This document shows positions 14,103-42,535 of a stretch of DNA of 64,000 nucleotides, one piece after another. The notes beneath the pieces were generated by a model. It saw only the letters and a program-made list of their open reading frames with translations. It searched no databases and was not told where the DNA came from. Each line of letters starts with the position of its first letter. Positions within the stretch are counted from its first letter, which is position 1. This DNA is from Laetmonice hystrix (Eukaryota), in the NCBI GenBank assembly GCA_965235115.1, contig OZ249446.1:15996001-16060000 (forward strand). The letters run 5' to 3'. The position numbers and the translations under genes are program-made.

Positions 14103-14637
14103 TTAAGCACTGAAGTGAAGGTTGTCCTTAGTGTTCCTCGTTCCCACGTCATCTTTGAAGGTTCCCAGAGTTTTCATCTCTGTGGCAAACTGGAGCTCGT
14201 TTCCATATGTTCGATCTAATGTCCTCACTACGTCGGGATCGAGTTCACAGAATGTCACGTGACTCGACCCGGGATCTCGTATATTGTCTGGTGACGTCAC
14301 GGTTGGCGGGCACTGCGAGTCCCTAATGTCGAGCTCTTGTAATTTGACGGGAACACACTTGCAGTTTAGCGGACCGTAAATGCCAGCGGAATACAATTTA
14401 TCGTATTTTAGCCTCCGTGGCTTGGAATTGGGAGAGTCCCACATGTAGGCGTAGTCACAGTTGGAGAGACTCGTCATCTCGCGAGAACACACCGTGCACG
14501 CCTGACGCGACTCGTAAATCGGTTCGCGTTGTTGCTGGTAGGTGTCGCTGCAACCTCGACCAACGATGTCCTCGGAAGCACATGTCATGCCCATCATGTT
14601 ACTTGGTTTCGAATGTCGGTGTCGCCTTTGCCCCTTT
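14103..14637 (-). CDS. Lectin-CUB-sushi receptor, terminal exon (cytoplasmic tail)
   Basis: ttcatttgtttacAG|aaagg; phase 2 matches the TM exon; KGQRRHRHSKPSNMMG...EPIYES...DYAYMWDSP...LKYDKLYSAGIYGPL...FCELDP...HFSA*, stop at 14103-14105. Confidence 0.85.
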
Positions 14638-15862
14638 CTGTAAACAAATGAAGAAACACAATGAAGTTGCTAATATCATTACGACGCATCAAAGGATAAA
14701 ATCAGCGCGGATTAATGTTTCCCCCTTTTCGATCAATTAGAAACATGATAGACCTAAGTGTGTATTACTTCGTTAAATATGCACCCATACAGTGTGGCTA
14801 TATAGTTTTTATTCTATTATTAAATAGAAAGTGGGCAACATTTTCGCAATAACTGCAGCTCGCTTGCATGTTTTGCTGTATCCCTGCCAACTGCTGTCTG
14901 TCATCATATATCCGATTTCTCCAGCCTGACGCCGATGTCTAAAAGACGCTGGCTCCTGTAGTTTTTTCTTTCCTCCAGGAGAGATCGACTTTGCTATAGA
15001 CATGCGCAAAATGCGAGCGCTTCGGCTCCCCCGCCCCTCCCTTTTCCTCATGGCCGTGTGCCACGCGGAAGGTTGGCCGGTTGAGCATTTTAAGCACATG
15101 CAAACTTGTTTTCTCTTTAAACAGCACTGCGGCCACGCAGTTCATATATTCCAAGGTGGACCCCTATGCCTCGACGTGGCAAAATAGATATGTCCAATAG
15201 ATGCCGGTGAGGTAGATCTACTTTTGATCGATTTTCACGGGAATCTTGGTTTTGGTTGTCAGGCCTTGGGTTTGTGCAGGTTCATTTGGCAAAAATATTA
15301 CCCCTACTGGGAAGTCTCCGTGCGCGGCAAATATGAACAATTTGTAACCCCCAGCGGTTTATGGAGGTATAAGTCTATATCAAGTCAACACGGCCGTCAA
15401 AGTTAACTCAATTCTTGAGATGCGTGGGATTTCCCTCGTATCTCAGTGATAATGCCAGTACGCCCCTAAATATTTGGAAGGTCATACAGGGCAGGAGATT
15501 GACTATCGGCAGTCCATCTGTTACAAAGGAAATCGTGTTGCAAATAAGGCCAAGCCTCGATGGATTTGGACGAGTGTCCGCGAAATTAAAGATATACCGG
15601 TCGTGGTCGATAGTTTTGAGCACACGTGTTGTCGACATCACCAACCATCAAAGCAGACACGAGTTGGAGTCATTTGAATTAGGTAGCAGAAAGCAGTTTG
15701 TGTTGGTGTAATATCAGCTCGCTGGGATATAGATCTTGCTAGATTCAATTCGTTGGTCGCCTTGAAGGAAATTATAAAAGCACGGCTCGCCTTGCCGCAT
15801 AGCAAGTAACAGATGCGCGTGGAAAAATCAATGTTGCCATGTTGAGTCTGTCAAGTAAAGCT

Positions 15863-16251
15863 NNNNNNNNNNNNNNNNNNNNNNNNNNNNNNNNNNNNNN
15901 NNNNNNNNNNNNNNNNNNNNNNNNNNNNNNNNNNNNNNNNNNNNNNNNNNNNNNNNNNNNNNNNNNNNNNNNNNNNNNNNNNNNNNNNNNNNNNNNNNNN
16001 NNNNNNNNNNNNNNNNNNNNNNNNNNNNNNNNNNNNNNNNNNNNNNNNNNNNNNNNNNNNNNNNNNNNNNNNNNNNNNNNNNNNNNNNNNNNNNNNNNNN
16101 NNNNNNNNNNNNNNNNNNNNNNNNNNNNNNNNNNNNNNNNNNNNNNNNNNNNNNNNNNNNNNNNNNNNNNNNNNNNNNNNNNNNNNNNNNNNNNNNNNNN
16201 NNNNNNNNNNNNNNNNNNNNNNNNNNNNNNNNNNNNNNNNNNNNNNNNNNN
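15863..16251. other. Assembly gap (389 N)
   Basis: Run of N in the last intron of the receptor gene; flanking exon phases (2 and 2) are already compatible, so no missing exon is required. Confidence 0.99.
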
Positions 16252-16849
16252 GCGCCGCATGACGTGAGTGTCCGTGGATTGCATGATAATAATACATTTC
16301 GATGGTTGAAACGTATGTCTATACTGGCTTCTGTCCAGCATCATATTATTTCAAACTCTCCAGGGTTTTAGCCTAAACCCCTGTTAGATAGAGGCTAGAT
16401 AATTAGCATAATAGCTTTCTGTCAGTGTTGAAAAACTGCGACAAAACGGAAGGCCAATCATCTTTTAGTACAAGACTGTACCTGGTTATTTTATGGCTAA
16501 TTATATATTTCTTACGTATGTGAGATAAAAAGCTGATTGTAGTTTTCTTCGTGCAACTGCGTCAGAAAAAAAACCTTAAAATGTCTCCGTGAAGCTCTTC
16601 TCTTCATTCCTTAGGGGTTATCTTCTCCCTTCTTATGTCAACATAATTCTGTCATTCGCGGGAATATTAGAAGCAAACTGTCAGCCTCTATAATTATTAC
16701 GTGTAAAAACCTTTCCTGATATAGAGAAAACAAGTCACAATGTCTTCTTCCCATACATGTTCAAAGATGTATTACATCTTTATATCTATATCATTTCTTT
16801 TAATAATCTATCGTGCCTATGTATATGGAAACAGTTGTAATGTACCCAC

Positions 16850-16931
16850 CGCCTGAAGTAATAGACGCCCATCATGAGTATGACGAAACTGATGAGGCAC
16901 GCAATGCCGGCCACAATAGCGATGAGGATTG
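16850..16931 (-). CDS. Lectin-CUB-sushi receptor, transmembrane exon (phase 1-2)
   Basis: gtattccAG|caatc ... GGCG|GTgggt; (A)ILIAIVAGIACLISFVILMMGVYYFR(R) is a roughly 23-residue hydrophobic helix followed by a basic stop-transfer RRKGQRRHR after splicing. Confidence 0.88.
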
Positions 16932-18074
16932 CTGGAATACACCATTACATGGAGGCATTATGCCTCATACTCCTTTATCTTTTCAGTTTGACCTCAGTAT
17001 ACAGTTATCCCAAAGTTGACAGTGGGTATAGGAATAGACAAGCAAAACTTACGCCGATAATGCTAATGCGTTAATAGGTGAAGCAATAGGAAAGGCTGCA
17101 GTGCGGCCCATCTGATCGAAATTAGCATTTTTAAATCTAAGAAACATAAAATGTATTAAGGACTATTCAATAGAGGTTTAAATTTAATGCTTTTAAATAT
17201 TATAATAAATTTAGAAAAGAAAGTCAAAATATTCGTTTACTATAGCCAGTAAAATCTATAACAACAGTGCTAACACATAAAGGCCGCAAAGAGACAATTA
17301 AGGTCAAACTATTAATTCTTTACATAAAGTTTTTAACTCGCGGAACTAACTTTCACTAGTGGAAAATAAATAGACAAATCCTATTACATAGATAAACGCA
17401 AACAAAGAGAATTCCTGGTGTGGCTCATGTCAAGGGTTTGACTGCACTCGATACCATAAGTCTCAAAAAGGTTATATATATGAAAAAAATGTATGGCGTT
17501 TTAAAATGCAGCGATTCTTCAGAACAAAGAAAGTATTATCAATCGACGTATCTACAAACACTGATGTTCCGGAGGATCGATTTACGCCTCTTTTAAAATC
17601 TATACAAGTAGGATGAAAAAACAAACTGGCACGCCACTGAATTCCTTCTTCCTTTTTATGGACACTACATAGTTACGTTCTTTTTGTGGCCGGAAGTTCA
17701 TTTAATTAGTTCTATCTAAAGATTGATCGCAAAGTATTTGCACTGGAACACGTGCTGTGAGTGCCATTGTAAAATTATTGACAGTGCTCATGCTATAGAA
17801 CAAAGGGCCGATACCGACGGGTAAGTAGCGTTTATTTACAAACATTGCTGAGCAAGAGGGACCTTTAACTAAAAAAAGGCCTAGAAGGGACAAACTTGAA
17901 CATAACGACATAACATGATGCAGGTCGAGCTCCTTGGAACTTATTCGGGCTCAACCCCGATGGGTGCTCTTAGGGTATACAACAGCGGGAGATATGAGAA
18001 AGGGAAGGGATAAACTGTAATATGATCGGGCATTGACGATTTCATGCACCGGTGAAATGGATAACAACACTCAC

Positions 18075-18131
18075 CTGGCGGCAGGGACATGACATCAAAG
18101 GCCAGGTGAGCCAGGTCGCCCTCTTCATCGA
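18075..18131 (-). CDS. Lectin-CUB-sushi receptor, 57-nt juxtamembrane stalk exon (phase 1-1)
   Basis: gtgctttcAG|tcgat ... CCAG|GTgagt; (V)DEEGDLAHLAFDVMSLPP; strong splice sites and phase fit both neighbours. Confidence 0.75.
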
Positions 18132-19019
18132 CTGAAAGCACAGATCAGTACCTGTCAGCAGATCTGTCTAAGTTAGCACGGCGTCAGCAGCAAGGGAACA
18201 GCATTATCGTCTACAAAGTTTTCCCCGTATTAGAGTGCAACATAGTCGATACACGCTCTTCGGAAAATGCTAATATTGGTATAGGTAGAGAATTATCTGG
18301 TACAAATCCATAATGTACCTGTGGTGAAATCTTAATGTGACAAAGGTGTGCCAGTGAAAGGAACAAAAGAACAATGGCCATATGAATGGCTAATTTTAAA
18401 ACGGAGAACTGTTGTTGACGATAGAAGGTCATGTACGCCTGTATCGTTTTTTATTACCACAAGGCGTTGTCTATACATTGGCAGAGCCACCGTCACAGCG
18501 GCTGTGGGAGAAGGGACTTCTATCCCCATCCCAGCCGTCAAGCTGCACGCATGCGCTGCTGGCGGAATACACAGGTATGTCACATACAACATGCCAAGCG
18601 GCTCAGCTGTTGTTTCTCACACCTTTAAAATTCTGTGTGATATGGAAATCAGCCAGAAGCTCTGCCTGAAGTGTATGGAATTTAGTGGGTATCGTTTGTG
18701 GATGGTTCTTAAACGCCATGCCTATCCCCGGAACGATTGAGTTGTTGATATCGGGATATCTGGCTCTTGATCACAGGGCCGCTCTCCTCACCCCTTCAAG
18801 CGGCATATTAAAAGGTTTGTCAGTGTTGGGTCTACCTGCTGCATGGGCGGATGTTTTCCCCGGTTGCTACAGTTTCTTTCGCCTGTAAAACTAACCCTTA
18901 CTATGGCTGAGGCGTAAGGTCTATCAAAATCTATTGTATATATATAGATCCGACAGTTGCCCCCCCCCCTCCGAAGTATAGGTGATTCGGATAGCCATGC
19001 CGGGTAAATGACCTTTTTA

Positions 19020-19250
19020 CCTGTGTCATCCAGTTGCGTAGAACTGGCTGGAAGTCAGGGATTGCGGTTCATTCCATGCGATAGTCCATAAATCAACCCT
19101 CATGGCCACTGAGTTGCCAAGATATGCTTGACCCCATCCGTCACCTTTTTACATAAAGGACGGTGTGGGCTATAGGGCCGCACTCCCACCCTGTGCCTCA
19201 GTGCAACTTGGAGTTAAGGTTCAATGTACAGATAGAATCTATAGATTCCT
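19020..19250 (+). mobile_element. Degenerate tRNA-headed SINE-like relic
   Basis: A-box-like CAGTTGCGTAGA (19031), anticodon-arm-like CTGGCTGGAAGTCAG and B-box-like GGTTCATTCC (19066-19075) in tRNA spacing, but no acceptor stem. The 3' boundary is a guess. Confidence 0.4.
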
Positions 19251-22200
19251 GGCCTGAGCAGATACGACTGATTGACTATAATGTGTGGACCTAGGCCTAT
19301 AAAGACCATGGTCTATTCCCTTGGGTCTCTCAGGACCTTAAAAATGTTTAGGTCGAAACTTGCGCCTAGCTGCTGTTGTAGAGTAATTGACATCATGACA
19401 TGGAAGGAAATGGGGAATAATCCTGTTAACCCCTGAAGACTTTTCAACTAATGTATAAGATAAGGTTAGAATAACCAAACTTGTCTTTACGAATTAGACA
19501 AACTCTGAAACCAACTTAATATGCTGTCTAGGGATAGGCCTGGGCTATGCAGGGCAAGACTCCTGATTGGAGCACCCACCATTGTTTATCCACGTGTTGA
19601 TTATTTTTGCCTCATTTTGCCCACCTCTTGACACCTCCCGCAGGTCTTGTCGGCCAGTCTTAACGTTGATAATGAGGCCAGTGGCCAAGCCCCTCTGAGC
19701 CTCTAGGTGGCAATCAATATGGGAAACTGATCGTGGGTGCCAAGATCCGTCTTATTTACACCATCTCTTTCTCACGTATTCCGTCGGCGTACAGGTCCAT
19801 TAAGTCGACTGTCACATTATACACGTCCCTGTGTTCGCTAAGCCCCGACCCGACCTGTTCAATACATCGGCCACACGACAAGCCCTCGGCTTGCGACCTC
19901 TAATAGAGGTCTTATTGGAGGAGGCGACGGGCGATAATTGGGGGTTATGATGCCGGTCGAAGGCGATAATTGGGATGCAGACTCCGCTGAGCAAAGTTAA
20001 TATTAGTAGAGCAACGTACGACAGGCTGGCTGTTTGCTACACAAACTGACGAAAGGTAATAGCGTGAATTATAATTATTATGTCCTTCACGGTTCTAGAA
20101 AAAAATCGCATAAGAAATATTTTGCTATGGTAAACTGTAGGCTCCTAGATCCGTAGATGCTGTGTGATTTAACAAACCTATTGTGAATCCACCCTGCTAA
20201 GGGTTAAGGAGTGTAAGCAGTAGGGTCATACGGTGATGACCAATGGTGTTAGCCGTCACTAAGTCCGACCCAGCAAACATTGTGTGCCTGCAATCCGTAA
20301 CCATATCCTTGCCGAAGGTCTACCAGCGACCTATAGGCCTATTACTATGATGTGAGAGAGAGAATGTCAAACGTATTGATTGACCCGAGGTCTGCAATGC
20401 AAGCGGTTATTTAATAGATCTCTTGAAATGGTGTTTTTTTTATGACCCGCCTATATGTCAGATCATGTGGCACACATATCCTACATTGATTGTTGCTTAC
20501 ATGACGTATGTATCCAATATATGCACGCTCAGTCAATAGGCCTATGTTTTATGCAGCTCCATTTGAAAGCCGATATTTAGCTAGGCCAATACCCAGTTTT
20601 CCGCCCTCACAGTTCGTTGAGGAGTTGGATATCTCCAGACTAACGGTGCCTGTTATATGCAGATCATAACACCCGTGTCCAATCGCTGTGACCAGATTGA
20701 GGAAGTGTCGGAAGGCCCCAATATTTGTATGCCCAAACACCCAGAGAAAACGAACACCATTGAAAAGAATGCACTCTGATAGAAAGGCTCCATTATCGGT
20801 CTGCATTTCATCAATTTCAGCCCGAATTCTGGTAGATTGTTGTGTCGATGAGAAACAGGAAAGGCGGCAATGAATGCTCGTTTCTTGGGGAGTGAAGGGG
20901 GTACCGCCGCACGTTTGGCCTTCAGGGGATTGCGACATGAACTTCCACAAGCTTTTACTCTCAACTGTCGATCGTAGAGGGATACAGGAATTTGAGGACG
21001 GCAACGCAGAGAGAGGAGACGTCGTTGGAACTTTATCTCCGTGATGCATACTGGACCCAGCTACCTTGCACACAATTAAACCGGCAACGAATCACGGACC
21101 CTACCGGCATCCTGGGTCAAGAATCTCCACGAATGAAACTAGTGAACCGAGATTCTCCCTCGCGACACTCCATGCGATAATTGGTATCATTTGTGGGCCA
21201 TGGTGTCGCGTCGAGCACGAGCGATGTCAGGAGCGAACGTGTCGCGTAGCGTTCAGTTTTCCTTTCCATGCGTCCTGGCCGAGCTGGAGCGTGTATCAAG
21301 CAGGATATTATGCATGAACGACTGCCACTAACCAGGGCAATCCGCTGCTTTTCTTATCTTGGCTTCATCTGCTGGGCTTGAGGGTGAATCAGGCATGACA
21401 CAAATAGGTTTTAACGCAAGGTTCCTAAATCATTTAAAATTCCTAAAATTTTGGAATCGGGCAATGTTTGGGTGTTGGCATTTACTACCTTAGAATTGTT
21501 CGTATATATATAAATCAAGTATATAACTTAAACCGAAAAACACCTTCCGTTTCCTGGCCTAGACACAACCACAGTCCCATAGGGGAACCGCTAAAAACCG
21601 TTATTGACCTACCCAAAAGTATAAGGATGATTCATCATGTTCACCGCTGCGGCAAACCCCTGAACAAGATAGGTCCTTGTGCATGCATGCCAAGATATAC
21701 TTAGTACGCTGCATTTCTTTACCACATCTGCGTTGAGAAATTGCTGCAAATTAGTGCTTATGGTGACGGTATTCTCCCACCGAATGTACTATGTAATCGC
21801 CAAGAAATGTGGCGTGGGCCTCTTCAGCTTTGAGCAGGGTCACGTCGGCGTTGGTCGTTTGATCAATTAAGGCACCACGAGACGTGTATTCATCGTTTCT
21901 TACTGCCGCCAATATTGCTATCAAAATGTCGTGTTCGCTTGATATCGATGCATCATCTGGCTATAAGGTTAGTATATGACCTCTTGATAAATGCTTACCT
22001 CTCACGACAAAGGGAACTCTTTCTTATATCAGGAATTCCAATGGGTGCGCCTCGCCGGAACGTCCTTGCCAATTAGAGACTCGCTCATTGTATGACTTCC
22101 TGCCCTCACAGAACATATATTTATATACTAACTACCAATTACGGGCAAGGCTTCCACTCTAGAGACACTTCCTTGGTATCTGTTTTTCATCGCCAAACGA

Positions 22201-25200
22201 GAGGAATGCGGTCTTGTGCACTCAGATGAATGAGGGCAAAATAGATTGACGATGTTTGGTCAGGGATATTCATTCACTCTTTCCCCCTCTCTCGATCTCT
22301 CATTCTCCCCCACTTACCCCACCAAGGCACGGCATCTGCCCCCCCCCCCATACACACACCCTTAAGAACTTAAAAGTGGGTTTAGATTATCTTTCTTGCA
22401 GTCTGTGCTTCACACCAGTTCATAACTATTTCATGATCGCCGTGTCTTAGTAAAAGGAAACTGTCCCCTTCCCCCAAGCACAGACACCTTGTGCTTCTCC
22501 GTCCGTCTCATGGGAACGACTGTGGCTCAGTGGTCTCAGCCTGTGGCTGTGGATCACAAGGTCTCTCACCTCCGGGTGAAACTGTTCGTCAGTTACATGC
22601 TTCAAGGTGAATGGTTTCGTCAGGGTTCTGGCGTGCTGCATCAGGAAGAAGACCACCTCGATATGGCCCTGGCTCTTGGTGACTCTCACCCCATGCCCCA
22701 TACCTACCACGCACACATCCATGGCGACACCGACGTGTGATTCTCTTCATTACGCAAAACTCACGCACATGGCGACGGCGACATCTAAATTCACAGCTAT
22801 ATCGCCTGACGGCCATGCAACCTCCCTGCAGCAGACGCAGGTCTGATGGGACCAAGACCTCCCAAATCAGAAGCTGAGCTTATCTCCGGTCTCCCCGTCT
22901 TAAAGACCAATGGCGACCTCATCCGATGACCTCTGTTGATTTATATATGGTGGAAAGTTCCGTGTACTGTACATTGATAGCCAGCCGTAGGAAATCATTA
23001 TCTATTAATAGACCCTCATCGGACCATCAACGAGCACCTTGCTTCTCTCGGCATTAAACTTCTCTAATAGATCAGGGAGAACACTAACAGCGAATGCTTG
23101 GTTGCATTAAACACAAGTTGCTAAAACCTAATGCTTGCAATCAAACGATGCGCATGACGAACAAAAGTTAGGACCACGCCCTTCCTCGTCACTGCACCAT
23201 CCACCCACGTTATGGACACAGAGGAAAGAAAGAAACCTTAAAGTAAGGATAGTAATAATCCAATCTGTCAAAACAAGATCTCTAGGGGTCTTTCCTAGGA
23301 GGGCAAGACATGGAGGAGCGGAAACCGTGCCAGTCATACGTCTAAGCCGCCGTTCTGTGTATTATGAGCCGGCAGAGATTATGTTTTTTTCTGTGTGTAT
23401 GCTATAACCACTAGGGAAGTATTATGGACTGAAACCAATGGATTATGTCTGACTAGTCATTAACATCTCTGAGTATAATTGATTTCAGTCCATAGCTGCA
23501 AGCTACTAAAGAAATACAACATGACACAAAGGGAAAAGTTCGTTGTCTTAGAGTGTGATCCTCCGACATGACAGTGCTCATTTCATTAGTCGTGGCACAC
23601 ACTATTATTGTGTACCCGCCTCGACGACAAGCCCCCAACACTAATATCTCCCAGTCCCCCCTGACAAGGAACATGTTCGTGGATGGCTCACGCGGCCCGG
23701 TATAGTTGGTGATGGAAGCGGCCCACTGGCCGGAAGTGAGTGACGCCGCAAGTACATGAGTCAGAACCTAAACATGCAGACATTTGCGTGAAATATAGCA
23801 ACTTGAGTAAAAATAGAAAAATGAAGATAGCCCCGTTCATGGGTAAAATCGTATTTATCGAAGAATTATGTTGATCACTTATATACAGCAGGCCCACTTG
23901 ATTCCTTTAGCATGAAAAACTTTTCAATTTTTCGTAAATCCACTCCAAATCCCTGCCTAAAGTGGGCATGATTGGGTTGGATGTGAGGAGAGCGCTAAGG
24001 AAATTCCAACTTTTTGTCGACAAAGCTGAAAGCTTTATAAGGTGGGCAGCCGGTGCGATGTGTGCTGGACCTGTGTACACTCCCAGTGTAGCATACCAGT
24101 AGCTCGAGGGAACGTCACGGCTGGCAGTTGTTCCATAAATATTGGATAGGCTTATGTACATGCACGACTCAGTGCTTTGCAATGACTACATAAAACGCTT
24201 CAGATAGGCCTATATAACCTCACTACAAACGGTATGGCTAGTATGTGAAATATGCCGTTCTGTTTTGTTAGATTATTCGGTACTCTTTGCCTTGAAGAGT
24301 CCGCTCAAGAAACTGATCCTCCGGGCAACATTGGCATACGTGGGTACGAGGTCAGATCCCCACCAATGTCGGAGCTCATAAGAAATTAACGCGTCGCACC
24401 GATATAATAATCATGTGCGTGTATATTTGATATAATCACATGTTTGAGAATATGATCATGTCTTTAGCTTGCAGGATATATGTATCAACCACTTGGGCCA
24501 GTAGGTTTTGTGTACCACACTTGTGAACGTTGACCAACTGCACCTTAACTGCTCCCTTTCATGACACTACACCCCCGTTATCGCTACCTGTAGAATGTCC
24601 GCCGTTTCACAAAGCTTGGTTAAATCGACTTCAGTAGACGTCGATAGGAAGAGAGGAGCAGGCTTGCTGTAGGTTGGACACCATAAACTAGGACCGTGGT
24701 CTCTCTGACGGCTCTGTCGGCGCCGAGCGAGCGACGGGTCGCTAAGTCGACAACGCCCGTCACCTTGGGTGTGTGGCGGCATTTGTCGACGTAATGCATA
24801 ACGCAATAACCCCTCGTAGACGTCAGTGCACGTTAGGCATACTATGGATCATTATGAAAAGACCACCCGCCATGGGATCACCTACATATGCATAGACAGT
24901 GCACGGAGGCATCCTATTGTGTGCTAACTCACTTACTCCGGTGTAATTAAGCCCCCGAAAAATACAACCCCATACCGAATCCCCCCTGTCCCTGCATGCG
25001 AGGGGCTTTTCTCGCCAGGACTATTGTGTAGTAGCGGGTCGGCGGAGGTAATTTTGAATGTATGAAATGAATTTTATCTGGGTCGGGCAGGCGAGGATTG
25101 AGCCGTGCACCAAAGGATCCTTTGTTTCAGTCATCGGCGCCCACCGCGGGATAGAAGCGTAACCTTCGGTGATCAGGCAAATCGAGGCGGGCTCTATTCA

Positions 25201-25548
25201 CTGAAAATCTCAACCCTTAGTCATTTGACTAACTTAGTCAATTTTCGCTAAGTTTGGGTTAGACATTTCATCAAAGACTAACCCTAGTCAGATTTGTCTA
25301 ACAACGTTAGTCAAAAAGACGAGTGTAAATCAACACATCAGACAGAGATAGTCCCAGATTACAAGCAGTGGTTTCGGAAGACTCGTCTTTAGGTTCTCTA
25401 AAATGCAAACACAGCGTGGAAATTAAAACACAGAGAGTCTAAATCTTTCTGTGTCAAGTGTAGGACTACGGGCATGTAGGTCTAGGCCTAGTTAGGCTAG
25501 TACTACGTGAAACTCTTTTCCGAAGATAAACGTTGAACCTATAGCTCC

Positions 25549-25611
25549 ATGCCTGCTCTAATGGCGGGAAGTTCAGCGCCAGGCCAAGTCAGACAGTGGA
25601 ACGATTTCAAG
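25549..25611 (+). pseudogene. CACTA-borne gene, putative first exon
   Basis: ATG CCT GCT CTA ATG GCG ... TTC AAG|GTaagt (MPALMAGSSAPGQVRQWNDFK); strong donor, but its phase 0 does not match the open frame of the next exon, so it may be 5' UTR or an intervening exon is lost. Confidence 0.35.
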
Positions 25612-25849
25612 GTAAGTTTTCCGGACACTCTCATCACCTAGCCTACACCTAATGTCTGAGTGGTCAAGAAGTCTTAGAGGGTATAGGAATTCAGTCAGTA
25701 TAAGTAATCTGTGCGCATTTAGGTCGGTTCTTCCGACAACAGAGACACTCGTGACAATATGGCCGCCTAAGCCTAACGCCAGTAACGGCTAACAACATAG
25801 GCCTACGTTACGAGCTCGGCCTAGCCTAAACCCAAAGTCTTAAGTACTG

Positions 25850-26210
25850 CAGTGTCGGATTTAGGGGGGGGGGGGCACAGGGGGCCTGGCCCCCCGAAAT
25901 TTTTCAAAAGCAGGGTTTTGCCCCCCCCCCCCCCAGGGCCGTGCCCAGGAGGGGTTTTTGGGTGTCTGTAACCCCCCTGGGCGCCAAAGATTTTTTTAAA
26001 TTGTTTTTTTAGGTCCTAAATAACGTCCGTCCGCTGTAGCACCAATAACCCCCCCCCCCCCTGCACCAATCTCTGGGCACGGCCCTGCCCCCCCCCCCCC
26101 CCCCAACTGAGTGACCCTTGCCTATGTCAGGTAGCTATGGGTCGATTCAGACACCCATACACCTGTCTCCCCCCCCCCCCCCCGAAAAAAAAATCCTGGA
26201 TCCGCCCCTG
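25850..26210. mobile_element. hAT-like MITE in first intron of the CACTA-borne gene
   Basis: Ends CAGTGTCGGATTTAGG and CCTGGATCCGCCCCTG (12/16 inverted match); GC-run-rich body; no 8-bp TSD found. Confidence 0.55.
25934..26087. mobile_element. 154-bp hAT-like MITE nested within the previous MITE
   Basis: Perfect 15-bp TIR CAGGGCCGTGCCCAG / CTGGGCACGGCCCTG, flanked on both sides by poly-C runs compatible with an 8-bp CCCCCCCC TSD. Confidence 0.8.
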
Positions 26211-26735
26211 GCCTCTACTGGCGTTACCCACAGCGCCAGTAGTTGTTGAAGACCAACCTACTTCATTGATCTCGAATTCTATGATTTGATCATATATCTA
26301 GATACGTTCTAGGGTATCCAGTCATTTAGTGAACTTGGAACGAGCCAACCCCCTGCCCGTCCCGCCTGCTACGTGATTTTGCGTGGCAGAAAAATTTACT
26401 ATAATAATATTAAGCAGGGTATTTGTACATTACTGTGGAGTTTTAATCCGGTACATGGACCTAGACTGCCGTGTTTATTTAAGAGTATTTTGACTTGACT
26501 TTTTTATTTGTGGGGGCTCAAATCGGCGAATTTAGCTTTGTGATGCCTATAGGGAACAGTGACTCTCGACTTCAAATTCTGATTATTCCATATTATAAAT
26601 ATGAGGCTCTAGACTAATGAGCTTAGCCTAATATTTGAACAAACCTGTTTTATTTTTGAACTTGCAGGCACTTTTCAGTTGATTTTTTTGTCATTGTATC
26701 ATCGTCTATTTCTTGCCATCATTGTCTTTTTTTAG

Positions 26736-26844
26736 AAGTTACTGCCTGGTGGCAGAAGCCAAAAAGAGAGTGCAGGACGTGACCTTGGTCGACACTGTCA
26801 TGGACCCCACGTTTTCTGGTCGTCGGTGGAATATATTGAAAGCG
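26736..26844 (+). pseudogene. CACTA-borne gene, exon 2
   Basis: ttttttAG|a agt ... GCG|GTgagt; SYCLVAEAKKRVQDVTLVDTVMDPTFSGRRWNILKA is open and ends phase 0, matching exon 3. Confidence 0.5.
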
Positions 26845-27145
26845 GTGAGTATTGCAAGCGTAATGTGTTAGTGTTAGTTAGTGTCCAGTGTTAGTGTTCT
26901 AGAAAGAGGTAAACCCCTGGCTGAAATCTAGATGAAATCTACATGTTTTGCTGTGAAACTTGACGGTATACATATAGCAGGTAAGTAATCTCTGGGTCTA
27001 TTGTCAGTTTTCATGCACAGTTTTAGTGTTTGAGGAAGAGGTGCACTTCAACGGAAATCTAGATTCTACATGTTTTGCTCTGAGACGTGATGGTATACAT
27101 AGCAGGGAAGTAATCTCGGGGTTTATTTTCTGTTTTCATGCACAG

Positions 27146-27308
27146 TTCCCAAAGGAATACCAGACAATAAAGCCACCCTACAAAAGTGATGTCATTCTGG
27201 AAAATACACACCAACCCTTATCGCCCTCTCTAAGTGCCAAGGAGATGTGGAACGGTGTTGTCGTCTCACTGCAGAATCAGCAGCTGACCCAGACAGAGGC
27301 CTTGCATG
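27146..27308 (+). pseudogene. CACTA-borne gene, exon 3
   Basis: ttttcatgcacAG|ttc ... CATG|GTaagt; FPKEYQTIKPPYKSDVILENTHQPLSPSLSAKEMWNGVVVSLQNQQLTQTEALH open, phase 0-1. Confidence 0.55.
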
Positions 27309-27817
27309 GTAAGTATTTATGACCGTCCTGGTTTTATACTTTACATTGAATATTGATTACTTTTTCTGAATTAGGTTAATGTTATATAACAGTATCACGC
27401 GTGTTTAACTGTAATGGCCGCCTACCACTGCTGGGGCTGGTCAAGCTTGGGTGTGAACGATAATGGTCCACCTTGAAGAGACTGAGTGTTGAATGGTATA
27501 AGCCACTGGCGGTATGACAGGGTATTTTGTAATGAATTATAGTATAGGAATGTATCAGACAATGTGTTGGCGATGGCAGATAGCTGGGGGGGGGCGGTAT
27601 AATGGGGCTAATTTATGTACTTTGAGATACAAGTGATCGGTGCTCAAGCTTTGGCAATAAGGAAGGTTGGCGATAGGCTGGGGGGAGGGGGGGGTATAAT
27701 GGGGGTTTACTGTACATAGTTGTATTGCAAACTAATGTTGATAAATATGATGTATGACAACAATTTCTTATAAATATTTGAAATAGTCTGAATATTGGTA
27801 ATTTTTTTCTTCTTCAG

Positions 27818-27963
27818 AAGAACGATTTTGCACCGTATATTCAAACAAAAAAAAACAATTGTTCAGTTCCCTGAACGAAGAGGACAGCTTCAGCATTGTG
27901 ATACAGGGCGTCAGCATGCTGCAGACGGACAACTTCTTTCAAGCCCAGGGGGCGTTGCACTGA
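27818..27963 (+). pseudogene. CACTA-borne gene, exon 4 (possibly truncated accessory-protein domain)
   Basis: tttttcttcttcAG|aa gaa; (E)ERFCTVYSNKKKQLFSSLNEEDSFSIVIQGVSMLQTDNFFQAQGALH*; phase 1 matches exon 3; TGA at 27961-27963. Confidence 0.55.
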
Positions 27964-29026
27964 CGTTAGGACTGGGCCTACGTAGGACTGAGCCAGATTT
28001 TAAATAATTTTCCAAGACGAATGGTGACGATTATAATTTTCTTTTTCTAATAGTGTCCTTTAACTAAACGAAGTAATAAAAACAGTTTTATTTAGTGACT
28101 TTAGTACAAAACGAAGCTTGTATTTAGTGCACCTAAGATGTTTGTAATTTTTCTCAGTAGTATTTACCAGTTATGCATTGTAGGTATGTACAGCTAGTGA
28201 CTGCATTGTTAACGCATTGTAGGCACAGCTAAGGACAGTAAACCTTTACTGTTGTAACTTCAAGTGTATACCCATAATGGGTACTGCATGGATACTGTAA
28301 GTTTGAATACGGTGACTTAAATACAATACAAAGTTTGTATTTTTCGTGCATCTCAGATGTTTGTTATTTTTTCAGTGGGATTTACCATTTGGGTATGGGG
28401 ACCAAAGCACATGCCGAGTGGATCGGATGTTAGACAAAAAGACTAACTATTAGTCAATCAAATTTGATTGACTAAGTTGCTAGCCATAAAGGCTATGGGG
28501 GGTCAGTCATTTTAGACACAGCCATAAAGACTAAGAGGTTAGTACTTTTTTTCTAACTTGTTAGTCAAAAAGATTTTCAGTGTAATTGTCTCGGTGGAGG
28601 GGATATTAGCGATCAGCCAAATAGTCCAGTCTGCCATCAATCTCGGGGATAATCCGCCCCCAAAGCTGGCAGAAAACGGTCCCCACGCCTCGCTCCATTG
28701 CAGGTCGAGTTATAGCAGGTCGTGACGTCTGGATGCCTGCCATGTCTGAACATTGCAGGACGGTCCGTTGGAAGCATCGCTCCTATTTTATGACTGCGTG
28801 CGATGACACTAAATCCCCCACTTTTTTGTTTTTGTATACGTATACACAATGAGGCAAAAACTGGCAGGTTCCATTTCTCCTATAGTAATACATGTATAGT
28901 ATCTATTCGCCTGCGTGCAGCTTTTTCACCAAAATATGAGACGGAATTACACATAAGAAATAGATGGGTCCTCGTAACAGGTGCATGCAGACAAACGCCA
29001 TTGCATGTAGTCGTGATATTCATACC

Positions 29027-29128: not shown

Positions 29129-29429
29129 TTGGGAGATGATAGGAAAAACAGCGATAACTATAATATGTATATCCCACAAATATGTCGTGTATAATCGTGA
29201 CAGCTTACTCCTTACGGAAACCATCATATATATTATATTATAACAAAAAAAATGGAGTATATCATTATGTAATGAAGTAAAGCCGCTCTGTTTTTACACT
29301 TGGTTTTTAGTTTCATGTGGAGATAGCAAAGAAGGCTACTTCTTGTAGAAGAGTCCGCACTCATGCCGTAATTTTTAGGTAGCGTTATATTTCGTGAGCC
29401 ATGAAGTGGGTCTATAAAGTGTTACGTAC

Positions 29430-32243: not shown

Positions 32244-35200
32244 CTGCAAAAATAGTCGACAATATCAAAATTAATAGGGCAACAATAACTGTAATGGTAT
32301 CATTCCACAGACGATTGCATCATTCAGGTGTAAATACGGTTGTATGTTCCAGCGCCGGATACTTCATGATAACAAATTATGAATGCGGATAAATCAAAAT
32401 ATATCCGTTTGTAGAATTTTTATTCATGTGTTCAACGTGCCGCATGCTTCGATTAGGCATAACAAATTCATGTATGCATTTACTCTTCCCTCATTAAGAA
32501 GATGAATTCTGTTGGAATTACCCTTACTGCCATCAACTACAGTTTTATATTCATTCCAACAAGCTTCTAATCTAACATTATGTACTCGTAGACGGCGCTA
32601 AATATGGCATGTAGACCCCCCCCCCCCCCCCCCAAAAAAAAGATGCTTTTAAATTGACTTTATAAATTGTGACGACTAAAGACACATTAGGGGCTGTGTT
32701 AAGTGCGACTTTTTTTTCGTTCCCCAGGCAAATATAGCTCGATCGATATTCAGACAGGGAGAGCGGTAGGGTACACGCCTTGTGGTAAACCATTGTCATG
32801 TCTATCATGTACATGGTACTCTGATCTCGCACATATTGGCTCCATCCACGCTCTTGAATCCCCACCAACCTGCATGTGTTCAATACCTGAACATAAAGGG
32901 AACAGGCCTTTGTAGTTCCCCGAGACATGACCTGTGGTGTTAGCGCGGCACATGTGCAAGCTATAGCATAAAAGTGTCGGAGTCCACACGTGTTCGTGGG
33001 TTCAAGTTCAGTGAAAAACTTGGCGCAGTGATATACGGACAACGCGACCTTCATGTGCTATTTCTTTCTCTCGTGCAATTTCGATTCCATTTTGGAAGTT
33101 TAGTTATTAGATCTATTTGTTGATGTGCAAGTAGTTTATGACTTCCTGGCTTTGTTCTCGACACCTGTTTAAATTCCCAAGACTTGGCTATAAGACGGAA
33201 ATGGTAGGACGGAAAACACTAGTTAATTAAGAGGAACAAAGCACGTAATGACTTGGTGGAGGTGTCTTTATGAAATATTTTCGTTTGTGCCAGTCAGAGG
33301 CAAAAATGTAAAAACGAGAGCATTTCACGTAGAACGCTAGCAATTCTTGGGCTACACGTAATGGGAATATTTATTGGTATGGCTGTACTGAAGTGAATCT
33401 GAATTTATACATTTTGCGTGAAATCACCATTTGCAAAGTGGCGGGGGAAGCTTTTCCCTGTGTACCTCATAAAAAAACGGAACATCTTGATTTTCAACAG
33501 ATACAAATTCCGCCCGATGGAACCCTTAACCATATCACGCTTAACTGAAATTCAACCTTGCGATCACATTAACGTGTATGCAAATACAGCCCCTGCTTTT
33601 GTTCCATCCATTTACTAATGGCGCTGGGACACAGTTACAGGCGTTTCGGGTATGGCGTCCGCACATTTTGGAGGTAATTACATGCATACGTCATTGTAAC
33701 ACTGCTTCTGCGTTCTTTTCTATCACATATGCAGCGCCATCTGTTTTTTCTCGTTATAGAAAATATTATATGCAATATGGAAAAGCATTTTAAAAACCAG
33801 GAAAAATGATATAAGAAATGCAGTGGGTATTGATTTTAGGGCTCGCACTTGTTCGTTATGTGAATTAGGTATGGAGGGTAGCATTAAAATCTCTACCTCA
33901 AGTTTGTGGCTCGCCCTTACTTTATGGGCGACTCTTATGTTCATGTGCTTTATTATGACAGACTAATTATGAGTACATGCAAATTTCTACCATCTCTGTT
34001 GTGGTTATTTATGCAGTCAGTCGAGATGGGCATTAAAATAAGGTCGCGCCTAAGTGATTTCGGAGAGGCGTACAGTTTGAGTTTCTTGCCTTAATATGCA
34101 GAATCATTTGGAAGTTGGTAATATGGTTTGATTACCCAAATGTATGAATGATAACGAAGAGTATGATTATATTCGTTACCCCCCAGACGTGACAGAAGCA
34201 GGGGCGTCGTGAGCCCCGATACCGGCTGAGGTGGCAGAGAGGGAGCTTCATTTCACACCTCTTTCTGTTGGTGTATCACCTGTGCAATGGTAAACATAGA
34301 TATTGCGAATTCAGCAAATGATATACATATAGTCTATGTATATGCCTTGAGATCCTACATGTGGTGTCTCACAGTAGAATAGTTAAATACCAGGTCATCC
34401 ATACGTACTGATCGCAGCAAAGGGCGATTATTACATGGTATATTTAGAAGTGAGGCAATCAAAGAAAGCATGATATTTGATCGTTGTGAACGTTTTTGGA
34501 GTTTAGTGAAGTCTGAACCTTTTAATCAAGGAAACGGTCTTAAAATCTGGCATGGTTTTAAATAGCAGGATCTAAGTTAATTGTTAGAATGCAGGTGATG
34601 CACGAACAAGGACAATCATAGGTGACGAAAGTACGTTAAACGTAACTATTCGAGGTTCAAACACTAATTCATTTCGAAAAGAATTTGTCGTGGGCACGTG
34701 CATGTATCGGAAATTATCGGGTTTAAAATTATTTCTGAACGGATGCCAAGCGGACATTAGAAACCTTCAATTCCCTTTCCTTCAGTATCAATCATAACTG
34801 ACATTTCACCCCGTTTTTTCATCAAAGAATCCTCTGCTTCCAGAGCAGAAATCAGAAACTGGCTTTTACGAAGGTTCCAAATTTGTGTGTGGTTTATGCC
34901 ATCACAGGATCAAACGTGAACACTACAAGGTTGCTGATTTCTCGGCGCAATTTGTAAAAGGCTATGGTTCTGTACGAATGAAGAGGGGTGTATTAGTGAT
35001 TTGGCTGATCTCTAAAATCACCAAAGGACGTGGATGTTGAAGGGTACCATCCGCAGAGATGAGAAAAATGGGCCAAGGAGAGGCGCTTCGTGTAGCCAGA
35101 GTTTGAACACGCGGTTTCAAACGCTTGGTAAACGCGGCAGTCAACGTCAAGAACTGCAGCTTGATTGGGAAAAAGGATTTTAGCTTGGATCCCGACATGA

Positions 35201-38200
35201 GAGATTTCATTGACCTACTCTGGCAGCTATAGATCTATAAGACGGGTTAGTAAAGTGAAATGACCCCGTAGTTTTGTTATAATCACGGTTTACGAGAGGG
35301 GAGAATGGGTGTCTCCAGAGAATTCCTTGAGATAAGGTCATCCTTATGATAAAACCCCCTGCTATTGTCATACGTGATACTTGACAGAAAACGTATGGAA
35401 ACAGATGCCCGCTTAATTAATCGTTCTCATGACCAAGCTCTGCTGTCCAATACTCGCTGAGGTTTTTGTTCATAATTCTACGGGAAGGAAGTCCCAGAGG
35501 CCCTTTATCTGTGACGGTTTACTGGTGAATGGGAACACCTAACTAAGACATGGAGATTGTAGTGAAGCCGACGAGGAGTGTACGTATCGATCTGCCAGCG
35601 GTCGGATGGCAGACATTATTCTGGTACCATAGCCTCTGTCTGTGTCTACCTGATGCAATCAACCGGCCGAGCCTGACGCCCTATCCTCAATATTTGGTGC
35701 CTAGCCCGAGGCAACCTTTCTTTGTTCCGCCAACAATTCACACTTGTTGCGCACACGCGTATTTCCATCTGCTCTGGAGCTGGTGAGCCTGGAGATGAAC
35801 GTGAGAGATCAACTTCTATCGGACCAGGCACGGTCACAATGGGACCACTGATGAGTTTTCAGTTTTCAATGGCGGAGGTTAATAATTTGTCCCCGCATCA
35901 TGTAGAAAAAGGGATTTCAAGCTTAAGGCTTATGAGAATTTTCCCGGTGGTCAAAGTTTATTTGGCACGGCACGGCAGATGCTTTCAAGTGGTACATTTC
36001 TATAGAAAATAAAAGATGGAGATCTGGTCGTGCAATGCGATGTATATACTTCATTGGTGCTGCACCTTGATGCGACTCGTTGGTTTATTCGTGCTTCTCA
36101 TTTATTGCAAATCGAAATGAAGGCGTTTGGTGTTGAGGAACTTCATTGCCCCTATGGCTACAGAAGATGCCAGCAGGGACGGCGAGCAGAAATAAGTGAT
36201 AGAATCATTTTAACAATACCCTGCCGGTCATTAATCTGCAAGGATATTGTTACATGTTGTATGTGGGGTGTATTTTTGATAGTTCCTTTGTTTGCCTGGC
36301 TGTTTTATGTAGGTTTTATGCATGTACTGAAGTTGGCCGTCACAAACTCTGTCCATTGGAGTTGGAGTGATATTTTTTTACACATATCCCTTCACATCGT
36401 ACTTCTCTCAATACAATAAGTAAACGATGCCGTAACACCATGCGTTTTCACTTTCTTACACGTTTGATTACTTAATGTGTCGAATTCACATACCTTGAAG
36501 TTCGACTCCCACGACTACTCCTCAAGCGCTCTTTCAGGCCGACCTTAAAGAGTTTCAAGCTCAACTAGCCTTGCCAGTTGCAAAAGACGGAGGTGTCAAG
36601 TACATCTTAATCATGCTCGTTATTATGCACGAGTTGAACGGTGTATACCACTCTACATGGAAAGATCAATACTAATTCTTGCTGCTTCTCTGCGGCTTCT
36701 GATCACAATTATGAAGCGTGCAACTTAGAGTATAAAGACGAAAGGCAAACCGTGCCTGAAGATGCCTATAAACACAAACTTTGATCTCGACTCACGCAAT
36801 ACACCGATAAGCGTAATGACTATTCTTATTATGCTTATCTCATTTTCCATTTTATATCAAGTGTGTAATTGTTGCCCGACATGCCTTTGAAAGGAACATT
36901 ATCTGTCACTATCAGATTATTAGCGGCATTACACGGTTTCTGTCTGAACAGTGTCTTTTACCGCCTGCTCTGCGTGAAGCAAAGTTACACCTTTCACGTT
37001 TTTGTAGTAGGTTTTAGCTTCCCCATCCTCAGTGATCCTAATGACAACCGACGCCGGCTCGTATATTTTTCATGCAAGTATTAAAGCTGTGTGGTTCCTC
37101 CATCCTTAGAGTTCCTCCGACCTAATGACTATTTATTAGTCGCTTGGCTATCAAGTAAGAGACATTTTCTGTTCGTAAGGACGTTGCTTCAGATATAGCT
37201 GTGAGGGGGAATGGAGAAATGAGGTCTGAAGTCTTTATGAGAATTTGTTATCTCAGATGGTGCTCGAAAAGATCAACCAAGAAAAAATACTATACCTCGA
37301 AATACGATTTAGGATTTATCATAAATATTATCAAAATGATACACCTTCAAAAAAAGTATCGTATACGCATATACTTTCCTGATTTTTTTTTCGAGTTAGA
37401 CAAAAAGATAAATTCAATGTTTAGTGCTGCAGCAAACACCACAAAAGGGCTCTAAATTTCGAGTAACCCACACCGGCTTATTAATAAAGGTTGACATATA
37501 TCATTTTGTTGGCCTGGTTGTCAGGGTTACGGAAATGCATGATGCCAAGCTGGCCACTTATTACAAACAGCAGGGTCAAAGGTCAAAGGTCAAAGTTCAT
37601 CAATCTATTGATGCACCCCCAAAAAAGACATCTTTCACTCTGTTTCCGTAAGTATAATAGCTAGGCCTACCATCTTTTGAGACACATGATTTGGTGGTCT
37701 TATGCAGTCCCGAGGGGTGTTGTTGATAAAAGTCACATCCTACGACCCGTCATCATTCAGCGGTAGCATGAGGTTGATTCATAACGTGTATGGGATTGCT
37801 CATACGACATAAGATATATTTGGCCAATTCCTATACTTATTGGTTTTGGTCCTATCGAAGTAGCTTCACCATGGGGTGTGGTTGGTGTAAAAGTTCCATC
37901 TGTTGGCACGATCGGGTATTTGAATGTTTCAGTGACCTTCATACGATATGCTGATGCTGCATGTATGATGTACATCAAGACGCCACGGATGTTCTTCACC
38001 GTGAGAAATGGAATGTTGTCACGCGAAGTCCATTCACACCGCATATGGCTATATCTCTCCTAACATGTGATCACATAATGCGTGAGAGGCTTAACACAGA
38101 TTTTTGTGTGATTGGTGGTCAATTGGTAATATGGAATTGAACTGTATTTGAGTATCCTAAAAACTCCAGCGTGTGAGATTAGTATACCAAGTTGAAGCCA

Positions 38201-41200
38201 CATTACGAGAGAGGCCACAAAACACTCGTACAATTCAGTGGTACACACAACTGTGCCATCCGTCAACAGATGCTTCTCTTCTTTTTTTGGAGTCGATTAA
38301 TTTCTCTTGGCGATTATCGCGTAGAGGGTGGATAATCAGACGCAGCTTGAAAGCGAAAGCCTCGTAGTGTTTTTCATTATAGAAATTACAAGCGGGGTCC
38401 CTTTTCTCTATTAGCCTCCCGGAAACACTCGGAAAAAGTAAACCTGTGCGAAGAAACATCCATTGAAAAAAATAACAATTGGGACTTAATGTTTTACACA
38501 TTTTCTGACGTGTGCTTTCATTGCAGAACCTTTTCCCATCCAGCACTTTATAGAGCCTCGTCTTAACTTCCACATGCATTATGGAGGCGGGCGTGTCCCA
38601 AAGGGTATATCCCATTACTAGAAACTAAGTACGTGCTAATCGTCAGGGTAGCAACGTAGAGTCCCCATAATTACATTGTGGGCTTAACACAAGCTTGATA
38701 TGCAAAAGGCGGCCATCATTGAGTATCTCGTCAGTTAGGGCCTGGGATAATATTCAGGACTTTGGTCTCCCTGACGACGTGGAGAGTAGGGGGTGGGGGT
38801 GTTCACACCCTTGGATGAGGAACTCTGATTTTGTGAATGTAAATCAAGTAATAAACAAAGCTCTACGATAATGATTTCAACAACGTTCAAATGATAATCT
38901 TCACGGGTTATTCCCTAAGGTAAAATCCTCGGAAAATGGGGGGGGGGGGGCTAGAAATTAGGGCAAGGGCGGGGATAATGATAGAGACAAGTTTCGTATT
39001 TTCTTCGTATTTGGCGGGGTTCTGGTGGGAGTGGCGTTCTAGTGAGGGCTAGGTTTATTACTAGGAAGAATGAGAGTTTTGTACCTCTTGCTATGAGATT
39101 CTATGTTGCCACTGGGTGGGATGGGGGTGGGGTGGGGTCGGGAGGGGGGTTCTCCCTCTTGACGCCCACGGTGGGCCAGACTTGTCACGATATTGTCATC
39201 AAGTTTGTAGTGTCTGCGTCAGACAGCTCGTAAATCAAACTCACACGTTACCCACACTCAATCACCACCATGTCTCGTTCACTCTGCTACCACCTATTGC
39301 TAGCCCGATGTCTGCCTGCATACGTCCATGTTGGGAACACGTAATCACCCCCAAGGGGACCCAGGGTAGAATAGGTCCCCAGCACCCTGTTGCCGTTTGT
39401 AAGGGGCCACCAAATCGCGTAGGGAGGTCTCAGTAGCGTGCAGGCGAGGGCAGTGGAAGGCGAACTGTTTGTTAGTTCCGTCAAATCTGCCTTTTGTAAC
39501 CACGTTTTCTGATCTCGCCCAGTGCTCCATAATAGGGTTATCAAAGGCATTGTCTGGCCAGAGGGGAATACAAAGGGCCTTTAGTCATTTATCGCAAGGA
39601 GCAGAGTACGTATACCATATGGTAGGTTCTCGTCAGAGCATGTAGCCCTAGCTAACATAATTAGATCGATACCTACTTACTTATACAATCGGCCTGGTTC
39701 ATCAAAGGTCTATGCTACCTCCAATAATAAGCCGGCCTTCCCGCCCGCTATGAGTCATACTGCCACTCCATCGATATTTCCGAGTCTAATTTACACCACT
39801 ATAAGCTTGTAACATAGGGGGTTCGTTGCCGTTTCCACCCATCTCGCCGATGTCATAACTCGCCAGTCAGATCTGATGTCACAACTGTGATATTAGATAC
39901 ACTCAAGCCGGTTAGAGATCGTTAGAAAGTATCTAATACAATTTAACGATGATCACCTGCGGAGTGAAGTCAATCCAATTTACCAGTGAATGATGCAGTG
40001 AACGATCGATTTCTTGTTATTTTACCATCTCGTACAGCCGTTATCCTTTGTGAAATGTGCGCACGTTGTCTGTGAGGGAATGACTCGTCTATTTATTTAC
40101 TTCAGTAATGATCACCTGGCTTGCCATTCTAGAACGTCTTTAGAAGGAATTCCTGGCCATTCAAAGAGCGTCAAGAAGGGAAACCAGAACAATTTTCGCG
40201 GCAGGCATCGCTTTGTTCGCTGCACATTCTCTGACGATCACGCAAATTGATATCCCCATCATATCCATGATTGAAATCGACGCCACCACGTCTATTTGTC
40301 TGTATCCATTTTGAAACAACGATCAAAATATTTCCTCTTCAACATTATTTTCAGATGGTGACACAAAATGTTGTGAGTGTAATTTAAAGATAAAACTCAC
40401 ACAAACTGTAGAAACGGAAGCACATTGAGCAGCTCCCCCTACCGACGGTTAGTAAACTAGTTACTGCACTTAAGATTGGCGTTGTCGACATAATACAGTA
40501 TTTCAATAAAACTGGAAAACGGTAGGAGCGATAACTTGAAGAGCATTTAGCACTATACGATCAGCGAGGTAGGTACAGTAATAGACGGTATTTGGAAACT
40601 CTCAGGGCCTCTTGCCAAGTAGAAACATGTATTCTAGATGTTATACTTATCCCTAAAAGGTGGACTAGAAGGTACAGCCATCTAAGATATGAAAAAAGAT
40701 GGTGACAAACTTGAAACACAAGAAGCCATTTGTCATGTGCTATTGGCCTATGATCTGCTGTGTATCACCTAAATGAACAGAGGTGCGTTACACAATTTGT
40801 CGTTAGGTTGAGGTTGACGTTAAGACCAATGTATTTTTCAATGGGGATTTTAACGAACGACAGATTAACGATGATTGTGAAAAACACCCCTGATTATGTG
40901 GACGGGATGGGGAGGTGGGGGCATTACAGTGTCCTTACTGGGGGAACGCCCTCTAAATACGCTACGCCAGGGGCATATTATGGTCGATAACTTTGGGAAT
41001 AACAATGAAAACACGTAATTTTATTGCGGAGCCTTCTTTCACATTCTATGGGATGTGCAGACTAACCATTTATAATAACTTTTAAAGCTGTAATAAAGAT
41101 AAAGCTCGTCCTGACCAATTAATGTTTGGACATTTACCTAAATAGCCGCTTTCATTCATCCTAATGGATTTAATCTCAAGGTTCCCGTTACCTCAGCTAA

Positions 41201-42250
41201 TGTAGGCGCCAGAACGTATAATATGATACGGACCACTAACTATATTTCCCACAATTCTTCATAGCCGTTAAAGTTATTCATTATAATTAAAAACTGCTAA
41301 ATAAATGACTGACGTAACGGTCATTGGGCCGACAAATGATGGCTGGATAGTGAACAGCTCTCCTGAGATGATGGTCCGGATAAAGACAAGTATTTCATTA
41401 CAGAATGGCGATTAAAAATATTACAACATATTAATAGAAACTGGGAGGTTTGGTGACAGTTATTGGTGGAGTGTCCTCCTCTCGAGTCTTATTCTCTGCA
41501 TAGGGGATGAATATTCATTGGCTATTGACAGAAGAATATACTGCTGTCGATTTCAAGTAGTATTTTCAAAAGAGAGAATGCAAAACTGGCAGGCCCGAGT
41601 CATGAGAGGGCATACCGCATTTACTCAAGTTATTTTTCTGAGAAATTAAGTCCCTAATTTGAATGCTACTACATGGGCGGCGATACGCTTTGACAGGTAA
41701 TGGAGTGGTTTCTGTCCCGATGTTGTTATGAGTGTAGATGAGAGGCCATTGCCAGGTTAGATTAAGGATCCGAATTTCTGGGTGATAAACAACCGCCACA
41801 AACGACATTGGACTAATTAAGGACTGATATGCAAATGAATACGTAACATAACGCCTGGTGGCCGCATATATTATAATATACGTCTAATCATGTGTCAGGA
41901 ATTCTCAATCACATGAGGGATGTGATAATGCACAGGATGAAAGCTCCTGAATTAATACATCTGCGATAGAAAATAGAAACATATGTCGAAGCTTCCTCTG
42001 AACTACAAACTGTGGATAATGGAAAATGGACATGCAACCCACCTCTTTCAATAGTACTCATCATTGCCAGCATCCCAAGCTAAATAATCAATATGGTTAT
42101 AGTTCTGCTATCAAACGATGTACCATATACCCACAGGAATCCCCTTTAGTTCATCAGTCATCCGTAGATTTTATGTAAACATACCAATGATTTTATGTAA
42201 GGCACAGCCGAAGCCTATAGATAACGTGCCGTGATAGCGTAATAACTCAC

Positions 42251-42535
42251 CTTTAACACACTCATAGCTGGTTTCGAGGTAGTTCTTGAATTCCTGGTTA
42301 CAAGGCCGTCTGTTACCGAAGGTTGGGTCAATGACAGGCACGCTACACGTCCTACGGCCCGAGCAGTATTTGTCGAGCAGTTTGAGGACGTTGGTGTAAC
42401 AACCAAGGAAGCCAAAGTCCGTCTTCACACACCGACCAATCCTCATACGGCCGTAGCGGGCAATGTTCATCATGATCACCTCGTCCGGTCCACAGGAAGC
42501 TTCGAACGTCTCATACTGGCAGTACTCCTGCAGCT
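42251..42535 (-). CDS. Lectin-CUB-sushi receptor, exon encoding SUEL/rhamnose-binding (Gal_Lectin)-like domain (phase 1-1)
   Basis: ccatgcAG|agctg ... AAAG|GTgagt; ELQEYCQYETFEASCGPDEVIMMNIARYGRMRIGRCVKTDFGFLGCYTNVLKLLDKYCSGRRTCSVPV...PCNQEFKNYLETSYECVK shows the eight-Cys SUEL-type pattern with A-x-YGR and YL-x-x-x-Y-x-C motifs. Confidence 0.88.

Follow-up and report, generated by a model that had tools for sequence, protein, structure and literature searches.

A 64,000-nucleotide stretch of the Laetmonice hystrix genome (GenBank assembly GCA_965235115.1, contig OZ249446.1, positions 15,996,001 to 16,060,000 of the forward strand; hereafter the window, whose own numbering is used below) carries on its minus strand, between 42535 and 14103, a gene for a predicted single-pass receptor. 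Based on its sequence, the locus is a member of the annelid family named in GenBank 'Gal-binding and CUB domains containing receptor'. The best explanation as a whole, to which we give a probability of about 0.8, is that of a family member whose SUEL domain is more likely a protein-binding or non-canonical module and which would signal through motifs of its cytoplasmic tail. The locus adds one ordinary member to a named, uncharacterised family; the new point is that the residue on which sugar binding depends is mostly absent from the lectin domain.

Gene model and domain composition

Inspection of the sequence flanking each open frame yielded six exons separated by five GT..AG introns, which together encode 503 complete residues. 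The exons, and one assembly gap among them, are as follows.

42535-42251, minus strand: lectin (SUEL) exon, 285 nt, phase 1-1, 8 Cys; acceptor ...ccatgcag/AG, donor AAG/gtgagt
32243-31845, minus strand: divergent CUB exon, 399 nt, phase 1-1, 4 Cys including a linker Cys
29585-29430, minus strand: short sushi-like (complement control protein, CCP-like) exon, 156 nt, phase 1-1, 4 Cys and an invariant Trp
18131-18075, minus strand: stalk exon, 57 nt, 19 aa, phase 1-1; tttcag/TC...CAG/gtgagt
16931-16850, minus strand: transmembrane (TM) exon, 82 nt, phase 1 to 2; donor CG/gtgggt
14637-14103, minus strand: cytoplasmic tail exon, 535 nt, phase 2, acceptor tttacag/A; 177 aa and the stop codon TAA at 14105-14103
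15863-16251, no strand: N-run assembly gap within intron 5, with non-coding sequence on both sides

Introns 1 to 5 measure 10007, 2259, 11298, 1143 and 2212 nt. An earlier note on this DNA had described six exons with canonical splice sites, consistent phases and a product of about 503 aa, and splicing returned the same 503 residues. Its remark that every extracellular module sits in its own phase 1-1 exon, the signature of exon shuffling, also holds, as the lectin, CUB, sushi and stalk exons are all of this type.

The lectin exon is clearly a SUEL/rhamnose-binding-lectin (RBL) domain by sequence. It matched Pfam PF02140 (E 4.1e-11; 43.5 bits vs. a cut-off of 31.4), and among PDB sequences the sea-urchin L-rhamnose-binding lectin 5h4s (E 1.9e-15) and latrophilin RBLs (1e-6 to 1e-3); the YGR motif and 8 Cys of SUEL/RBL domains are retained. 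The exon at 32243-31845 is read as a divergent CUB domain because a family profile and the predicted fold both point to CUB. The profile, built from 52 family sequences, found only CUB proteins among PDB sequences, namely cubilin (1.8e-4), PCPE-1 (3e-4) and further GPR126, TSG-6, enteropeptidase and Neto2. The AlphaFold2 model of this exon (predicted local distance difference test, pLDDT, 86) had CUB domains as nearly all of its top structural matches, with Z of 7.3-8.7 over about 100 aligned residues, and the homologs P0067 and P0091 reached 18.7 and 16.2 bits for PF00431 vs. a cut-off of 21.4. The exon at 29585-29430 is a short sushi/CCP module by its cysteine pattern and modelled fold: the pattern C..C..C..W..C is invariant in all nine aligned family members, and all 50 of the 50 best structural matches of the model (pLDDT 85) are CCP modules (Z 4.2-5.5), almost all of them aligned over 49-51 of the 51 residues at about 2.5 Å. 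The domain searches called for in the earlier note recovered SUEL by Pfam and PDB sequence search, CUB by profile and fold, and CCP by pattern and fold.

The stalk exon, for which the earlier note gave no position, has the top splice score of every phase-compatible open exon in the 11.3 kb that separate the sushi exon from the TM exon. Its product ends in ..SLPP, and homologs carry ..SLPxx ahead of the TM helix. A direct splice from the sushi exon to the TM exon, with the stalk skipped, would be in frame; it was rejected in view of the splice sites of the 57-nt exon, which are the best, and of the homologs' stalk of about 20 aa. The TM exon contains the most hydrophobic open reading frame (ORF) segment of the interval (KD 3.06), followed by a basic stop-transfer stretch, and shows weak tblastn matches to the TM segments of the relatives P0070 and P0075. 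Its donor leaves two codon bases, the third being supplied by the tail exon, whose phase 2 acceptor fits it. The stalk and TM helix are followed by a tail of about 178 aa, in which no Pfam family was found, and a poly(A) signal AATAAA lies at 13923, 180 nt past the stop codon. Since all four N-glycosylation sequons are confined to the ectodomain (none in the tail) and a basic cluster follows the TM helix, the predicted protein fits a type I single-pass orientation.

In the direction of transcription, the TM donor lies 598 nt before the assembly gap and the tail acceptor 1225 nt after it. Across this intron the reading frame continues from the TM exon into the tail exon, with an ordinary basic stop-transfer sequence as the result; a Capitella homolog has its tail exon directly after the TM exon, and the family alignment has no missing block at this point. 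For these reasons the gap most likely alters only the length of intron 5, while an in-frame exon may be hidden inside it.

Intron 3 contains a high-copy repeat at 27400-28584, over which public DNA contigs reach 400-3000x vs. 40-60x in the flanks, with a sharp break at 28584/28585. The repeat would correspond to the right-hand part of a putative transposon noted at 25199-28582.

The annelid receptor family

A HMMER search with the CUB exon returned 715 cluster representatives at E<1e-3. Most of them are single-exon genomic fragments, and several are proteins of about 500 aa with the same architecture. The named relatives are hypothetical proteins of Capitella teleta and the Arenicola marina 'Gal-binding and CUB domains containing receptor 15' (UCK81578.1, P0075). 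Three full-length relatives lie on contigs of 1.9-2.5 kb and are therefore spliced transcripts, from other samples. In the reverse direction, tblastn of Capitella and Arenicola proteins (P0075, P0049, P0061 and others) gave ordered matches to the lectin, CUB and sushi exons with E from 1e-28 to 1e-4; for P0075 the values were 1.7e-22 for the lectin, 3e-16 for the CUB and 7e-6 for the sushi exon. Receptor 15 and the Capitella SUEL proteins share with the predicted protein the domain order, a length of about 500 aa, the 16 extracellular Cys and the tail motifs, and the full-length alignment is collinear with all 16 of these Cys in common. Identity to these relatives is 35-49% per domain, whereas the tail is unrelated save for the short motifs. 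Capitella P0049 (KB308612.1, 6001-9177) has its pre-TM intron, of 57 nt, at the position seen here. However, its lectin domain is split by an intron and its stalk is fused to the sushi exon, while in Laetmonice the lectin domain is one exon and the stalk a separate one, so intron positions are only partly conserved in the family.

In the 627-Mb genome of Laetmonice, at least 43 matches to the CUB exon and at least 59 to the lectin exon were found, each in one open frame, clustered on three contigs. From these sequences we estimate about 50 paralogs, which are old and mutually divergent. The nearest one is about 40% identical in the CUB domain and 61% in the lectin domain, and a search of the same genome with the tail returned only the gene itself. 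A neighbouring paralog on the same strand occupies contig positions 16109844-16114744, about 50 kb past the window end; it shares 59% identity with the gene described here in the lectin exon and 37% in the CUB exon.

In a quick maximum-likelihood tree of CUB domains, 8 of the 11 sampled Laetmonice paralogs each paired with a distinct database protein. The gene itself paired with P0001, an ORF of 154 aa in another public assembly (ENA contigs), at a support of 99, and grouped with no paralog of its own genome. This one-to-one pairing indicates that the copies are old and stably inherited rather than products of a recent burst.

Besides two DgyrCDS entries, the matches in AlphaFold DB clusters (E 1e-10 to 1e-4) are proteins labelled 'SUEL-type lectin domain-containing'. 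Judging by the style of accessions and locus tags, we take them to be annelid (Capitella, Helobdella, Dimorphilus). The ESM Atlas places the family cluster in Annelida; a rotifer cluster at 0.87 is a tentative lead. The range seen is annelid, and by these sequence matches the family appears to be lineage-restricted. A literature search with the family name, annelid lectin/CUB receptors and annelid SUEL lectins found no paper and no documented function for it; PMC13094222 was discarded as a paper on the family, as CUB appears there in reference DOIs only. The earlier note had proposed an uncharacterised lophotrochozoan family and a domain combination recognisable in no named gene. Lineage restriction and the lack of a documented function hold, the range seen is confined to annelids, and the combination already has a name in GenBank through Arenicola receptor 15. 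The absence of a named human, fly or worm ortholog was borne out, since SEZ6, NETO2, CDCP1, Kremen, EVA1C and latrophilin share only single domains with the protein.

Three known systems deserve comparison. EVA-1 of Caenorhabditis elegans and EVA1C are likewise single-pass proteins with SUEL/RBL domains that lack sugar-binding residues, and a structural look-alike of a family member is found among them. However, they carry two tandem SUEL domains and a FAM176 region (PF14851) and no CUB or sushi domain; identity with them was rejected on the single SUEL domain and the absence of a Pfam family from the tail. Latrophilins (ADGRL1-3, LAT-1) have a homologous RBL fold (E 1e-6 to 1e-3) but continue with olfactomedin, hormone-receptor, GAIN and 7TM domains, none of which occurs in this gene. 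The model has a single TM exon and no GAIN/GPS or 7TM, and an adhesion GPCR (G-protein-coupled receptor) was discarded. In SEZ6, CSMD and C1r/C1s/MASP a CUB domain is directly followed by CCP, as here; a SEZ6 cluster is a feature look-alike at 0.86, and C1s CUB2-CCP1 and the CUB and CCP modules of MASP are among the best structural matches. These proteins have no SUEL domain and contain several CUB/CCP repeats or a protease domain, so the similarity is at the domain-superfamily level only. SEZ6 and CSMD were dismissed as identities of the gene on the absence of SUEL from both.

Lectin site and possible mode of action

In the RBL domain of mouse latrophilin-1, rhamnose is bound by Glu42, which follows the first Cys, and by Tyr63, Gly117 and Lys120 (PMC2430599). 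The substitutions E42Q, E42D and K120R abolish binding, E42Q with the loss of both rhamnose and galactose, and the authors concluded that Glu at position +1 of the first Cys is necessary (PMC2430599). In the predicted protein this position is occupied by Gln, the canonical Asp of the DPC motif is missing and loop 2 has one residue inserted. Of the 30 Laetmonice paralogs compared, only 7 have retained the Glu. On these residues, neither this member nor most of the family is likely to bind sugar in the canonical way, and the glycan-sensing role put forward in the earlier note becomes doubtful. The replacement of the critical Glu by Gln makes the SUEL domain more likely a protein-binding or non-canonical module. 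A protein-binding role has also been argued for the RBLs of EVA-1 and latrophilins, which often lack the sugar-binding residues (PMC2430599).

Based on the above, we suggest the following mode of action. The ectodomain would serve as a ligand-binding head held on the cell surface, in which the SUEL module may act together with the CUB domain in a protein-binding or otherwise non-canonical manner, as in the lectin domains of EVA-1 and latrophilin. The signal could then be relayed by short linear motifs that are conserved within a tail which otherwise evolves fast. Two such motifs recur in the family, ..[HY][IM][WY][ED][ST]P (here YMWDSP) and [YF]x[EV]L[DEN] (here FCELD), and their pattern suggests docking sites in a disordered tail.

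Several points weigh against this interpretation. The tail motifs are short and only loosely aligned. The Lys of loop 2 is possibly kept, adjoining the one-residue insertion, and another mode of sugar binding is possible; moreover, the loss of sugar binding is deduced from one mutational study of a distant homolog. No Pfam match was obtained for the CUB exon (PF00431) or for the sushi exon (PF00084), sequence searches with the latter were not significant, and the structural Z values are middling (best 8.7 for CUB and 5.5 for sushi). Finally, as the lectin exon opens in phase 1, an upstream exon with an ATG and a signal peptide must exist. Two scans for an ATG, a hydrophobic core and a phase 1 donor, over the window and 10 kb beyond, found weak candidates only and no convincing initiator exon in the 31 kb upstream. 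Public records list no RNA run; the three runs that hold the locus are genomic, their contigs cover introns and exons alike at an even 40-60x, and the junctions are predicted ones.

Of the other explanations, a cell-adhesion or axon-guidance co-receptor similar to EVA-1 or neuropilin, which would recognise a secreted protein cue by means of the lectin fold and the CUB domain, survives best, and we nevertheless regard it as unlikely. The sugar-blind lectin fold resembles the RBLs of EVA-1 and latrophilin (PMC2430599), the CUB domains of neuropilin, Neto and Kremen are protein-binding co-receptor modules and stand among the best structural matches, and the old paralogs show one-to-one pairing with proteins of other samples. 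However, about 50 paralogs with unrelated tails would be unusual for such a role, and there is no orthology to EVA-1 with its two SUEL domains and FAM176 region.

It is improbable that the protein is a glycan-sensing pattern-recognition receptor, whose SUEL domain would bind rhamnose- or galactose-type sugars on microbes or cells and trigger an immune response. Homology to SUEL/RBL domains is clear, down to the YGR motif and the 8 Cys, the multigene family is large and clustered, as those of invertebrate immune receptors typically are, and those paralogs that keep the Glu may bind sugar. Nevertheless, Gln stands here at the position where E42Q abolished rhamnose and galactose binding in latrophilin-1, the DPC Asp and the normal length of loop 2 are lost, and the pairing of paralogs with proteins of other samples gives no sign of fast turnover.

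A silent or decaying pseudogene copy whose exons are still open is very improbable. The missing initiator exon, the listing of genomic DNA runs only and the long introns full of repeats would agree with it, yet signal-peptide-only first exons are hard to locate from DNA alone, and the six exons are open, with canonical splice sites and every conserved Cys. In addition, the counterpart ORF P0001 is open and 90% identical in amino acids over the whole CUB exon. The two exonic variants in public DNA runs of one sample (32035 and 29464) are, by codon reading, both third-position and synonymous, vs. a variant density of about 1% in the neighbouring intron, although these counts are low. In appearance the gene is intact and conserved.

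Window context and significance

Outside the gene, the window contains minisatellites at 1054-2048 (47 bp x 21.5), 50404-50886 (50 bp x 9.7) and 51749-53361 (29 bp x 54.6), the first of which accounts for the strong GC skew over the initial 2 kb. None of the other long ORFs of the window matched a Pfam family.

The receptor of Laetmonice hystrix offers a clean case of phase 1-1 exon shuffling giving rise to a lineage-restricted family of receptors. This family, at about 50 copies per genome and with an undocumented function, is a sizeable blank in annelid cell-surface biology. As the lectin domain is for the most part without the residue that sugar binding requires, the GenBank name 'Gal-binding' and the reading as a glycan sensor may mislead, and protein ligands deserve attention too. 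It is conceivable, though we hold it to be rather unlikely, that some 50 receptors with a mostly sugar-blind lectin domain and unique tails constitute an undescribed, annelid-specific system for the recognition of protein ligands. If so, it could be used in cell-cell, gamete, self/non-self or microbe recognition, and the gene described here would represent one old conserved specificity.

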